Positions 17,732 through 24,200 of a stretch of DNA of 64,000 nucleotides are shown in pieces. Each line of letters begins with the position of its first letter. Positions within the stretch are counted from its first letter, which is position 1. Made by a program: the position numbers and the translations under genes. The stretch covers positions 186,001-250,000 of the forward strand of contig JALMLS010000255.1 in assembly GCA_038496445.1 (NCBI GenBank), written 5' to 3'. This DNA is from Trichosphaerium sp. ATCC 40318 (taxonomy: Eukaryota > Protista > Tubulinea). The notes under the pieces were generated by a model. The model saw nothing but the letters and a program-made list of their open reading frames with translations. It was not told the DNA's origin and did no database searches.

Positions 17732-20700
17732 TTAATAGATCAAGTCTACTAAATCTATACAATCGTCTGTTATCTTTGTGCCTACCATAGATCCCATAGT
17801 GCCAAAGTGCTTCCCTTGTGATAAAAGTTTCAAAGTGCTTTCTGCTGCTTTGGATGTATCAACCTGAGACGAAGAGATTCCCCTATCAAGCATAATCTTG
17901 TAAAGGTCATCAGCTTGTGATGGCTTGTTCTCTGCCTTCAGACAGTTCATTACCATCACATAGCTTGCTGATGCTACTTTGTGTTGTAGCGCTTGATTAT
18001 CTTTAAGAAGTTGAGCACTCAGTTCAAGCTTACCCAACTTTGCTGAGGCATAAATCGTTGCTTCATAAGCAGCAGTAGTTATTGATTCTTTGTGTTTTTT
18101 CATAGCATTGAAACACGCACAAACCAGTGCATAACGTTCACGTTCAGCAGCATGGCAAGCCAAAGCATTACAGCTAGCAAAGGTCGGACTCATTTTTGCT
18201 TGTATCATCTTTTGGTGGACATCAAAAGCGACATCGAGTCCTATTCTCGAAGAAATCTCCAAAGCTGTATCAAGTAGATGCTTAGGAGCCCGAGGACAGT
18301 GTTCTATAATATGTGTGATTATCTTATCCATATTTGAATGTAAACCAAGGTTGTTTAAGCCACGTAAAAGGATGATATAGAGTTTTGGTGTCACGTCAAA
18401 TTTGTACTCTTGGACAAAGTCGAAGACTTGGATCATTTGGTCTGTTCTGTCCGCGTTAACGCTTTCTATCATTACATTCATAATCTCTCCAGGTGGTACC
18501 TCAGTATCCTTAGATGCTGCATATTTCAAAACACCGAGAGCTCTCTCAATAGATTTGGTTTGAAAACATGCGTCAATAGCTAACTTTACAGATTGCATTG
18601 TTGGCGCTATACCGTTTGCCTCAAGATCTTCAAACACTGTAATTACAATCTCTGGATCTTTTTCGATACGTTCCATGACCACTCTAGAAAAAAAAGAGAA
18701 AGTGTTAGTATTCAATGGAGACAGAATTGCAAAAAGTTTTGAATTTGAAAAAAAAAAAAAAAAAGTCAAGATTTTTGGGTTTGCTGACGTACTTGTACAG
18801 TTCATCGTTTGTTGGTAAATTGTTTTCTCTGGCGTATTTGTACACTTCCCAGCATCCATGAGTGTCTTTTTCAAATTTCCTTGCGACAATGCTAATGTAT
18901 TTGGGAATGACATCAACACGAGGATCTTCAACCCATTTTTTTAATAACTCAAAACTACGTTCAGGCGACAAGTTCAGCAAAACAGCGTTATGAGTATCGA
19001 AGTCTGGCTTAATACCACGATCATGTAAGCTCTCAAAGACATCCAACATGGCAGCATGGTTGTCTTTTCGTCGCAAGTAATGAATAAGAGTGTTGTACGT
19101 ATAAATATCAGCCTCAACGCCACGTGAACTCATATCCGCCAATAGCACTTGCATACGCTCTGCGGCTGTTTCTTTCATCAAGCTCTTGTATAAAGGCGAA
19201 TATACATCATCTGGATCATCTGTAACAAGCTCTGATATCTCAGATCGTATTTGACGTGGTACGTGAGTACGAGTGGCTTGTGTGAAACCAAGCATGAGGA
19301 CAGTGTAAACAGCATTGTTCGGTACTAGACCTTGAGACTGCATGCTAGTCAGTACGCTTACAATGTCTGCTGTTCTGTTTGCCTCAGCCAGCACTTTGAG
19401 TACGACATTATATGTATGAAGCGACGGCATTATACCTCTTTCTGGTAGTTGTTCAAGCAGTGAGAGCATGTCATCAATGTGACCTTCAAAATCGTGCGTA
19501 TCTTTTCGTCTACTTTGTGCGTTCAACCACGTCGTAATAGTTTCTAGATTGTGGCTCTTGCCTGTTTCCTCCATCTCGTCCAAGACGTCGATTGCAAGGC
19601 TACTATTACCATCATTCAAGAGAGTGTTTGCCATCACATTATAGACAGATATATCAGCAAGCCCTTCGGCTTTAGCAGCATCAAATAAACGCAGCGCATG
19701 ATCCATTCTGTCTTGCTGCGGTGAACCAAAGTGACTAATAAGTTGGAGATACAATGAAGAACTCTTTTCTTTAGAGCCATTTATAGATTTGTATAGTTCC
19801 AAACTATCTTCCATCTGTCGCAAAGAATAAATAAACAAATAATCCAAAAAAATCACAACAATACTACGAGCTTGTAGTACGTCTTGTTGTATAAGTTTGC
19901 ACGTGTTAGCGTACCTTATTCATGTCACCTAAGAGCTGTGCTAATTGTACATAGTGTTTTTTACCCATAGGCACGCCACGGTCTCTCAAATGCGTAAACA
20001 AATCTAAAGCTGTCTTGCGATCATTTTTCTCATGCACAAGCTGAGCCCATAAATACGCTTTAGGCTTAAAGGGAACACCTACAATAAAAAGCCAACATTA
20101 ACATCATAATAACACAATCATAAACAACATTGAGAAACACCTTAACTCTTGTTCCTCTCCAAAACAAATTTTTCGAAAAAATGTCGTGTCAAAAAAAAAG
20201 TACGTACTGCTCTTGAATTGGGTGACATCCTCGTAGAGTGTACGTAAAATACTATGGGATCTACAACGCTTAAACATAATATCAAATAGCTGATACGTTG
20301 GCTCTACAGGATGATCTGATTGCTTCATTTCATTGTACACTTCAAATGCTAGCTTCTCGGTTGGCGCCTTGGAGATCATACGACGGTATATATCCTCTGA
20401 TGGAACCATTTTTTGCTCTGATGTCAGCGTTTGAAGCTCTTTGAACAGAAAATCAAAGTCGCGTAATTCTTCCATGCACTCAGCGAAGTTTTGTTTATTA
20501 CATGCCCCTTGTGTGACCTTTTTCAAAAGGTACGCTTCTTTCACCTCTAAGGTTTTTTAGATGGCTTAAGAAAGCGCCATACGCACGGCTTTGATGTGTT
20601 TGATCGTGTGTTGTAGCCACTGATTGCTTTTTCGGACGTATTGGCTCCACTGTTTCTTGTGTCTCTGAAAACGGCACCGCTGTCGACCTATAGCTATATA

Positions 20701-20815
20701 AGCACTAATTATACGGGTAATAACATTCGTACTGTTCTCTAATCGTTCTCGTACGAGAAATGCTCCGACGGGCAACAATAGTCGCTTTGGTACTCAATAG
20801 TGCGTACTTGAACAT
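17732..20815 (-). CDS. Pentatricopeptide-repeat (PPR) protein, predicted mitochondrial
   Basis: ATG 20815 gives MFKYALLSTKATIVARRSISRTRTIREQ (basic/hydroxylated, acid-free presequence). Many 35-aa repeats follow, e.g. PSLHTYNVVLKVLAEANRTADIVSVLTSMQSQGLVPN and ADIYTYNTLIHYLRRKDNHAAMLDVFESLHDRGIKPD. Confidence 0.88.
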
Positions 20816-21133
20816 CCTCGTGTAATTACGACTATTTTACACCAGGCTTACGCGAAACTGCAACTTTACGCGTTGCGTATACTAAGAACAAGCCATGCAA
20901 CCAAATTAAACAACAATAATAAATACAAAAAACAGTCGTAAAAATGTTGACTTAGCGTCAATACAAACATCACTCTATTATACATTCCTACAAGCCTTTT
21001 GAAAGTTGAAATACTCGTAAAGCGCAATTTTGGAACGTGATAGTCCAACAGAAGATGCCGAAACTACAAAACCTGAGACCATTTGGGTCAACCCAAATCC
21101 GCACTATTGAGTACCAAAGCGACTATTGTTGCC
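20771..21133. repeat. Perfect 34-bp inverted repeat (arms 20771-20804 and 21100-21133, 295-bp spacer)
   Basis: GGCAACAATAGTCGCTTTGGTACTCAATAGTGCG at 20771 and its exact reverse complement CGCACTATTGAGTACCAAAGCGACTATTGTTGCC at 21100. Confidence 0.97.
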
Positions 21134-21214
21134 GTGACTATCCTCATTTCAACAAAAGAGTAGCTGCTTATACAAGTTTATTTTGATAGGTCATCCCGAG
21201 AAGTGGCACGTGAT

Positions 21215-24200
21215 TTAATCGTCGGCATACCCCAAGTCCTCATTGTTATCTTCACATGGCTTATCAACCACGTCGTCATACCCCAAATCCTCGTTATTAT
21301 TTTCACGTGGCAAGTCAGATGACGAATTCAGCTCTAAGAAAGCATAAGCATTTTCGTTTTGCAGAATAGCGTTCATATTTACCTTGTCCCAGTCTCGTGA
21401 GTTCATCGTGTACATCTTGTATGGTGGGCCTCTCTTCAGGAGAGTTGCTTGTACACTTGATGACCAAAGACTTCCAAACAGTATTATCACTTTTGCCAAG
21501 GTGTTCTTCCACCCACTTGCTATTATTTTTCAAGTACATGGCTTGCTTATAGGCATTGATGTTTTTTCTCACCAATGAATCCTTTGTCTCAAGCTGAAGG
21601 CTACGATTCAGGTGAGAAACTCGATCAATATTGAAATAATTCCTATTCCGAAAAAAGCGTACATGATTAAACCGAGGGAGTACACATCAGCTGGTTTATC
21701 ATACACACTCTCAGTCAGTACTTCTAATGCCATATATTGTACTGCGCCGGGGATACCACTACACACTTCTGAACCCTCACCTGTGCCCATGTAAGCAACA
21801 GTAGACAGAAACAAGTTTAACTTACCCAAAAGCTTACTAACACCAAAATCTCCAAGTTTGGTTGCACCCTCCTGTGTCAAAAAAATATTGCCTATAAGGT
21901 TTGATAAGGTAATATGAGTGGCGAATGACAAATGGGTACCTGGATGTAAGTCTCTATGAACAAGATTTTTACCATGCAAATACGACAAAGCACTTGATAT
22001 TTCTATCCCAATCCGGAATTGATCGCTCCTAGGCAAAAGTACAGGATTTCTCTTGCTCTTTTTCAGCAGTCCTTCTAGAGTGCCGCCACCACAGTACTAT
22101 TTGTGTGTCAATAAATATGCACGTGTGCGAGAAAGTAAGTATTCAAAAACTCACTTCAAAGACAAGGCAAGGTATGTTGTTGATTGACGTCTTGCACACT
22201 CCCATCAGCAAGGCGATGTTACTGTGCCTTAAATCTCTAACTGCTTCAAGTTCAGCTATTTGTCATGGTGTTAGGCGATAATGACTTTAAAAGAAAAGGG
22301 TGTCAGTCTTACCCATTATTGCTTTGTCAATATTTTGTCCTTGCTTGGCGTTGTTTATACACTTGCATGCAACACTGCTACCATAGTACTGGCATTTGTA
22401 TACAGCACCATAATGTCCCTGTATGATGTAAGTAAACAGTTTTTGAGGAAGAGCAGTGTCCAGTAGTACATGACCTATCGGGACCCATGGTCCTTCCAAT
22501 GCATCTTTCTCAATGAGCATGTTTCCAATACTATAGTGAAGGCGCTCTTTTGAAGTCGGCTGGTTAGAACGTCGAACTTTAACTGTTTCGCCTTGTTCTA
22601 ACTTGGACAAATCTACAACACAAACGTTGATTATACACTTTCTTTTGGTGTGCTAGCAAGTACCTTGTTTGGTTAGAGGAGAGGATACCCGGCTATTATC
22701 CGAGTAACACAATCTGACAGCGCCAGGTATGGCGTATTTAACACGGATTCTTTCACATAGGGTGCCATGTGTTATTTCATCTTCTGCAACCGTAACTGAC
22801 TCTTTTCTTTCGTGATACTCGCAATTAATGGTGATGTAAGACGCTGTAATAAGCGTCTGTCAGTGGTTTTGTTTTGTTTGTTTTGCGTACTGATGCCATA
22901 GTAAGAGAAAGAACTTTCCGTTTTTTTGAGGGCATCAAGAACATCAACAGTTGACGGTCTTTGAGATGCTGATTTCCAACAGCTAGATATGAGTGCAGCT
23001 ATGTCTTCTGGCGTACTATCTGGAATCGAAGGACGCTCCTGGTCCAGTATGATGCGGTTCTACCATGCATCAGCTACAAAATGGAGAAATACTAGTTAAG
23101 CACGTTGCTTAGCTGAGCTTACAACTAGTAATTGTTGATCTTGATCGCTCTTGTCTAGTCCAAATTTGTACGGTTTTGTGCCATTACTACCACGTGTAAG
23201 CATATTTATATTTTATGAATAAATCACGTGCCACAAAGCCCATAAACACATACCAAAGCCATAAACGTTGACTCTAATTAGTGTTATTAATGGCTTAGTT
23301 TGAAGGGTGAAAAGAAAAAGAAACCTATTATTGCACTGTGTCACATCTCTTTCAAGTATCTCTGGAGCGCAATACATGAACTCATTTTCTATTTTCTCAT
23401 CCATGTCTTTCGTGAAAGGAGCCCCAGACAACACAATTGTATCCTCAAGTCCACCAATTTTAACCAAAGCAGTAGTTTCTTTTGTTGATGTGATCTGTAA
23501 GATATTATTTAATCACTACAACACAAGATTTCTGTACGCACGTGGATGTTATCTGCTTTGAAAAAAGGGAATACAACTCTCGGAGAGTGTTGTGCAAGAT
23601 CATCTAGAGCTTCTATGATTTGTAATGCAATCCTAAAGCGCAGTGCACCTGTAAAATCGGTACTCGCTTGCTAAGTAAACCCATGAGAACAAGACAAAAA
23701 GAGGCAAGTACTTTTAGCTGTGTGCCCAAGTTATATTCAGCTCGATCAAAAACGAGTCCTTTGTGACTTAATTTAGGCATATAGACAACGCCCTTGTACT
23801 CTGAGTAATAATCAGCGGTGAAATAATGACTTATGATATAATTCCACATTGCATATTGTATCCACGAGGCTCTCATTTTCGCTAGAACAAGACCAGTAGT
23901 CTGAGCAACGTTCAAAAGAGTGCCATCCAGAAACCTACATAAAATAAGTCATAAACAACACATATTCCTTAAAAAGTATGTCACGTGACTGTACATCAGG
24001 CGCAATGCGCTGCAGTGAATAAGCTTTAGTTTTGATCGTGCATGTACCTAAAAATCCAGTTAAAACAATATAAACAGGTAAACTGTGATTCCTCACCATC
24101 TTTCCTTGTACGCCATACATCGTGTAAGTCCCATTGAATCTTATCTGACGTGTTTCTGTCAAAAATGACAACATAACGCTTTATAGGATTTGTGCGAAGA

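Follow-up and report, generated by a model that had tools for sequence, protein, structure and literature searches.

A short inverted copy of part of the inferred first exon of a PPR gene in its upstream spacer in Trichosphaerium sp. ATCC 40318, probably a neutral templated insertion

Gene arrangement at the locus

The DNA analyzed here (the window) is a stretch of 64,000 nucleotides from Trichosphaerium sp. ATCC 40318, corresponding to C14:186001-250000 of an assembly of 70.28 Mb in 642 contigs; positions given below without a contig label are counted from its first letter. Two genes follow each other in tandem on the minus strand, 400 nt apart. The upstream gene encodes a protein kinase (Pfam Pkinase and PK_Tyr_Ser-Thr), has introns of 45 to 62 nt, and ends with a TAA stop codon at 21215-21217. 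The original prediction had given the kinase an AATAAA signal near 21183-21178. Such a hexamer is present in the 3' flank of the gene, one base away from the predicted position, at 21182-21177 on the minus strand, and it is followed by CA and then by a T/GT-rich stretch. This AATAAA probably serves as the poly(A) signal of the kinase, and the normal kinase mRNA presumably ends near 21150-21170.

The downstream gene (17732-20815, minus strand) has about six exons in our model, and its large exons match Pfam PPR_2, PPR_3, and PPR; for the 383-aa open reading frame of one exon, the E-values were 9.7e-30, 1.6e-22, and 5.8e-13, respectively. A representative protein library contained 6564 PPR-type matches to this gene. 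An exhaustive search of its 1.84 billion representative proteins gave 26% identity for the closest one, and a metagenome scan returned one PPR protein with 25% identity. BLAST revealed no paralogous DNA of the locus in the 70.3-Mb assembly. Judged from these searches, the PPR protein is lineage-specific and has no close relative among the 1.84 billion representative proteins.

The 5' end of the PPR gene had to be modeled. The ATG at 20815-20813 (minus strand) is the first one after an in-frame stop, and it would open an exon 1 of 83 nt (20733-20815, minus strand) that encodes the peptide MFKYALLSTKATIVARRSISRTRTIRE(Q). The first 26 residues of MFKYALLSTKATIVARRSISRTRTIRE include seven K or R and no D or E. 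Among 2610 ATG-opened 26-codon stretches from 260 kb of the contig, 1.4% had this charge pattern, and only 0.11% combined it with the S/T/A/L content of the exon 1 peptide (p ~0.001-0.014). The peptide thus strongly resembles a mitochondrial presequence. The putative intron 1 (45 nt, 20688-20732, GTACGA...TATAG) removes an in-frame stop and keeps the frame into a predicted exon 2 (20687-20534), which a second putative intron (55 nt, 20533-20479, GTACCT...CTGAG) joins in frame to exon 3. Three introns further downstream in the PPR gene also begin with GTACG, and one intron of the kinase begins with GTACC. Were translation to begin at the next candidate start instead, the N-terminus (MEELRDFDF...) would be acidic, and an organellar protein would lack a presequence.

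The segment 20848-20873 (minus strand), 33-58 nt upstream of the PPR ATG, contains CGCGTAA twice in direct orientation, with the copies 18 nt apart. The first copy is part of an ACGCGT, and a small GCAAC...GTTGC hairpin is found in the same segment. These are possible promoter elements of the PPR gene; if they are, its 5' UTR would be very short.

The inverted repeat and its edges

The segments 20771-20804 (left arm) and 21100-21133 (right arm) are perfect reverse complements of each other over 34 of 34 nt, as found by reading the sequence, by repeat and pattern searches, and by a script. The plus strand of the left arm reads GGCAACAATAGTCGCTTTGGTACTCAATAGTGCG, and that of the right arm is the exact reverse complement of GGCAACAATAGTCGCTTTGGTACTCAATAGTGCG. 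The near end of the right arm lies 285 nt upstream of the A of the PPR ATG, which confirms the perfect inverted copy, 285 nt upstream, that the original prediction had described. The right arm is intergenic; it begins 81 nt after the kinase stop codon and 43 nt after the AATAAA, and the normal kinase mRNA probably ends before it. The PPR ATG and the in-frame stop that precedes it lie within the 295 nt between the arms (20805-21099), and the promoter and 5' UTR of the gene presumably do so as well. If the elements at 20848-20873 are the promoter, the right arm lies outside the normal PPR mRNA.

The left arm had also been assigned to nucleotides +12 to +45 of the PPR coding sequence. We accept this assignment as part of a plausible gene model, given an ATG that is the first after a stop, a presequence-like peptide, splice sites similar to those in neighboring introns, and an alternative start that is acidic. 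On this model the arm extends from the last base of codon 4 to codon 15 (peptide ..ALLSTKATIVA).

The repeat is real, beyond chance, and outside any repeat family. In the pattern search, 100 dinucleotide-preserving shuffles of the window produced not one match, even with up to three mismatches allowed. When 501 nt and 2.8 kb around the site were compared by BLAST with the whole assembly, only the self-matches and the match of one arm to the other were obtained; the arms are therefore the sole two copies in the 70.3-Mb genome, and the sequence between them is unique. A self-BLAST of 2 kb showed no duplication longer than the arms already found. The search of the region for Rfam families (E up to 1), tRNAs, and tandem arrays returned nothing, and we rejected a tRNA, a known RNA family, and a tandem repeat as the identity of the locus.

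The same searches bear on the reading of the arms as terminal inverted repeats of a 363-bp MITE that landed on the 5' end of the PPR gene. The geometry is MITE-like, with terminal inverted repeats of 34-40 nt around some 290 nt. However, neither the arms nor the spacer have another copy in 70.3 Mb, the flanks (...CCGACG and GTGACT...) have no common direct repeat that could be a target-site duplication, and one of the would-be terminal repeats is in-frame coding sequence of a presequence. We consider a MITE or other transposon hardly credible here, effectively refuted by the absence of further copies and of a target-site duplication.

An error of assembly or polishing, such as a chimeric read that added a short inverted segment, is very unlikely. 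Fold-back artefacts of long reads are usually palindromes on the kilobase scale, and a 34-nt patch within 295 nt of unique sequence does not look like them. Moreover, unique, non-repetitive DNA surrounds both junctions, and the reading frame through the left arm is open and makes sense. Some room for an artefact is left by the way in which the published Trichosphaerium draft was made, from Nanopore, PacBio, and Illumina reads followed by Redundans reduction (PMC10521059). That draft comprises 70.87 Mb in 710 scaffolds, with a mean intron of 75 bp (PMC10521059).

The repeat search extended the arm pair to 40 nt at 95% identity (20771-20810 and 21094-21133). Pairing stops sharply at the outer edge (20771/21133), with none beyond it, and in the 6-nt extension at the inner edge four of the six positions match. 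Both mismatches of the 40-nt version are therefore confined to its terminal 6 nt, which by our own arithmetic would be expected in about 2% of cases if mismatches fell at random over the 40 nt. From this we take the copied block to be 34 nt long, and the inner extension reads as microhomology or chance rather than as decay. The inner junction has CAA.T in common with the flank of the donor, and the outer junction has nothing in common with it.

Two further ideas about the junctions were discarded. The flanks do not look like a patchwork of templated snippets: 8-mers shared with the neighborhood of ±500 nt account for 8-21 of 40 nt, and the background averages 10. The other idea concerned the C-terminal tail of the kinase (21220-21311, minus strand), where the protein closes with repeats of the acidic motif NNEDLGY(D/A)D, encoded by two tandem 51-nt units with 85% identity. 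The edge of the right arm was considered as a degenerate third copy of this unit; the resemblance extends over 17 nt at 76-82%, which by our own rough estimate is the chance level for 3 kb.

A perfect palindrome of 18 nt, ATTTGGGT-CA-ACCCAAAT, lies at 21081-21098; a single base separates it from the inner junction of the right arm. In 260 kb we counted 55 hairpins of this type, and we estimate the chance of finding one this near to any of the four junction sides at about 0.3%, an estimate made post hoc. The palindrome may be a stall or snap-back site tied to the event that produced the repeat.

Origin of the repeat

To place the PPR-kinase pair among other inverted repeats, perfect arms with spacers of up to 1 kb were surveyed in C14:1-260000 and compared with shuffles. 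Arms of 12, 13, 14, and 15 nt were observed 16, 4, 3, and 1 times, where the shuffle means were 20.5, 4.3, 1.3, and 0.3. A general excess of short inverted repeats can be dismissed for these 260 kb, since arms of 12-16 nt occur at the shuffle frequency. Above that length there were only three inverted-repeat loci, the PPR-kinase pair included. The chance frequency of the short arms indicates that this pair is a discrete, rare event and not a product of composition.

The other two of the three loci are larger inverted structures. The segments C14:6501-7878 and C14:9670-11058 form an inverted segmental duplication of 1.39 kb with 98.4% identity; the copies are separated by about 1.8 kb and contain 111-nt repeats. 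At C14:79721-80038 there is a 318-nt inverted repeat (83%, arms of ~135 nt, loop of ~47 nt), an older and far larger hairpin that stands just upstream of a minus-strand open reading frame, MORN-repeat-like by eye.

The nearest parallel within the genome was found at the U2 snRNA genes. There, an inverted copy of the U2 5' end, 26 nt long and 96% complementary, lies 263 nt from its source (L025:1515-1540 and 1804-1829, G000:C13); it recurs in several copies of the U2 gene (also L026 and L028). A U12 locus has an inverted repeat that is weak (23 nt, 78%). The U2 copy and the PPR copy are nearly the same in size (26 vs. 34 nt), spacing (263 vs. 295 nt), and orientation. They differ in that the source of the U2 copy is a small-RNA gene and not a protein-coding exon, and the U2 copy is the older one, having been carried along in several gene duplicates. 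Such near-identical geometry at an unrelated gene points to a mutational process and not to a purpose-built device. It also suggests that this genome collects short inverted copies some 260-300 nt from their source, which could be the preferred reach of the copying process.

Taken together, we think it likely that the repeat arose in one recent and probably neutral event, a templated inverted insertion that copied part of PPR exon 1 into the spacer. We infer the copying event, its direction from coding sequence to spacer, and its neutrality from the DNA sequence. During replication or the repair of a break, a DNA end in the kinase-PPR spacer would have jumped to the other strand some 300 nt away, been extended by 34 nt copied from PPR exon 1, and then gone back. 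The outcome would be the perfect inverted copy of PPR +12 to +45 that lies 285 nt upstream of the gene's own ATG. The route may have been a template switch in replication or a fold-back in which microhomology primed the repair synthesis. SD-MMEJ and snap-back synthesis by polymerase theta are related routes to templated inverted insertions at double-strand breaks. Genes for family-A polymerases are present in the genome, and a polymerase theta may be among them.

Both routes have precedents. In a replication template switch, the reverse complement of a nearby sequence is written elsewhere, and perfect hairpin arms can originate in one step at sites that had no prior similarity; the majority of these mutations are neutral, and a small number of the hairpins become small-RNA genes when an existing promoter happens to transcribe them (PMC10710096, Mönttinen et al. 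2023). In yeast, fold-back repair at breaks yields inverted insertions that are mostly ~5-34 bp long (PMC11724301).

The direction of copying has to be argued from the features of the two arms. Of the two arms, the one in the spacer is more likely to be the copy. Since 34 is not divisible by three, an insertion of this length would put coding sequence out of frame, and the spacer tolerates any insertion. This length, together with the palindrome that stands beside the spacer arm, makes the exon the likely template (left arm, probable donor) and the spacer arm the likely product. The opposite direction would mean that the spacer sequence is the original and that 34 nt of PPR exon 1 were overwritten by the reverse complement of it, which would have given the protein a partly new presequence. 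In favor of this direction, identical arms carry no sign of which was copied from which, presequences are permissive as to sequence, and a stretch of 34 nt has, by our own arithmetic, a chance of about 59% of being open in a given frame. Still, this direction demands a replacement of exactly the same length within a coding exon, as 34 is not divisible by three, and a product that stayed presequence-like, when 1.4% of the ATG-opened 26-codon stretches reach seven basic and no acidic residues. The palindrome, a likely stall or repair site, also sits at the spacer arm and not at the exon arm. We regard the overwriting of the exon as unlikely.

The original prediction had named a neutral template-switch scar as its null model. 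This null model fits the data better than the regulatory role proposed beside it: in its favor are the perfect arms, a length not divisible by three, the palindrome adjoining one arm, and the parallel at the U2 loci. Three points qualify the neutral scar. The perfection of the arms may just as well come from selection for continued pairing. The argument from the palindrome is post hoc. Finally, the copy matches a region near the translation start, an RNA reading through from the kinase would cover it, and Piwi, RdRP, and RNase III genes are present in the genome, which leaves a function possible.

Possible function and comparison with known systems

The regulatory proposal was that the repeat acts as a switch, an antisense regulator, or a small-RNA locus. 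In such a reading, the repeat would be a working module, or a nascent one already in use, that lowers PPR expression through a hairpin or antisense RNA. An unterminated kinase transcript would cross the right arm and continue into the PPR gene, a Dicer-like RNase III would cut the 34-bp stem, RdRP would possibly amplify the products, and small RNAs or the duplex itself would lower PPR expression.

The complementarity that this demands is there. Because the arms are exact complements, any minus-strand RNA that covers 21133-21100 would, as predicted, match the probable 5' coding sequence of PPR (+12 to +45) in exact antisense orientation. The 34-bp stem foreseen for a read-through RNA was likewise borne out when a hypothetical minus-strand transcript of 451 nt, from 21180 to 20730, was folded: the stem, a duplex of -62.8 kcal/mol, was kept in both the minimum-energy and the centroid structures, and the whole RNA folded at -148.2 kcal/mol (z = -5.7). 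The tandem order of the two genes on one strand, 400 nt apart, would allow such a transcript. The genome also encodes silencing genes: a Piwi match above the cut-off on C37, about six RdRP loci on C29, C81, C93, and C6, and RNase III domains at several loci, some of them paired. The presence of Piwi, RdRP, and RNase III genes indicates that the capacity to process the stem would exist. In plants, inverted duplication of target sequences gives rise to young small-RNA loci (PMC3237417).

The geometry, however, is poor for a dedicated hairpin gene, as the loop is 295 nt long and presumably holds the PPR gene's own promoter. Normal mRNAs would each carry at most one arm; with the PPR start presumably inside the spacer and the end of the kinase mRNA presumably before the right arm, only RNAs that run on from the kinase into the PPR gene would carry both. 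The inverted copies beside the U2 genes imply that a mutation process alone suffices to produce the repeat, and the locus has no Rfam match. A role as a switch, antisense regulator, or small-RNA locus is thus possible but unsupported, and the neutral template-switch scar fits the data better. We hold a hairpin or antisense module that is already at work, or nascent and in use, to be distinctly unlikely.

A more specific version would join the two readings: the scar may have been co-opted as a sensor of read-through, in which a failure to terminate the kinase transcript leads to a duplex in cis, the duplex is passed to Dicer, RdRP, and Argonaute, and the mitochondrial PPR protein is silenced. 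As a model of this locus, we find such a sensor quite improbable. If it were true, the locus would be a small-RNA locus at its birth in an amoebozoan, with the target gene itself as one of its arms. More generally, if the repeat is used, it would link the termination of one gene to the silencing of its neighbor and would exemplify the birth of a small-RNA gene in Amoebozoa.

If the repeat is a neutral scar, as we favor, it would be a clean and datable case in which one copying error gave a gene a perfectly complementary neighbor. Partners of this kind have been proposed as the starting material of new hairpin and micro-RNA genes. The spacing of ~260-300 nt found at both the PPR and the U2 genes could also tell something of how this genome is replicated or repaired.

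For plants, a model in which microRNA and hairpin-RNA genes are born by inverted duplication was reportedly put forward by Allen et al. in 2004; an update is available (PMC3237417). The PPR-kinase repeat resembles this model in that the target sequence has been duplicated in inverted orientation, with perfect complementarity at birth. In the plant model, both arms are part of a separate, self-transcribed locus and extend over hundreds of nucleotides, whereas here one of the arms, of 34 nt, is the target gene itself. The present repeat also differs in belonging to an amoebozoan.

With the insertions made by fold-back repair, the repeat has in common its size of 34 nt, its inverted orientation, a template in the same locus, and a sequence that can form secondary structure adjoining the junction. 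Those insertions were measured at induced breaks, with templates right beside the break, and the PPR template is about 300 nt away. The microhomology at the PPR-kinase junctions is also weak for an insertion of the fold-back or microhomology type, with four of six positions at one junction and none at the other.

Most described template-switch events reach less than 295 nt, which tells against such an origin here, and those collected by Mönttinen et al. in 2023 are said to be mostly shorter in reach and to form compact hairpins. The PPR repeat differs from these events in that its source is 295 nt away and one of its arms is coding sequence of a live gene. Like the mutations left by template switches, the arms of the PPR-kinase pair are exact reverse complements of sequence nearby on the same chromosome, and their edges are sharp.
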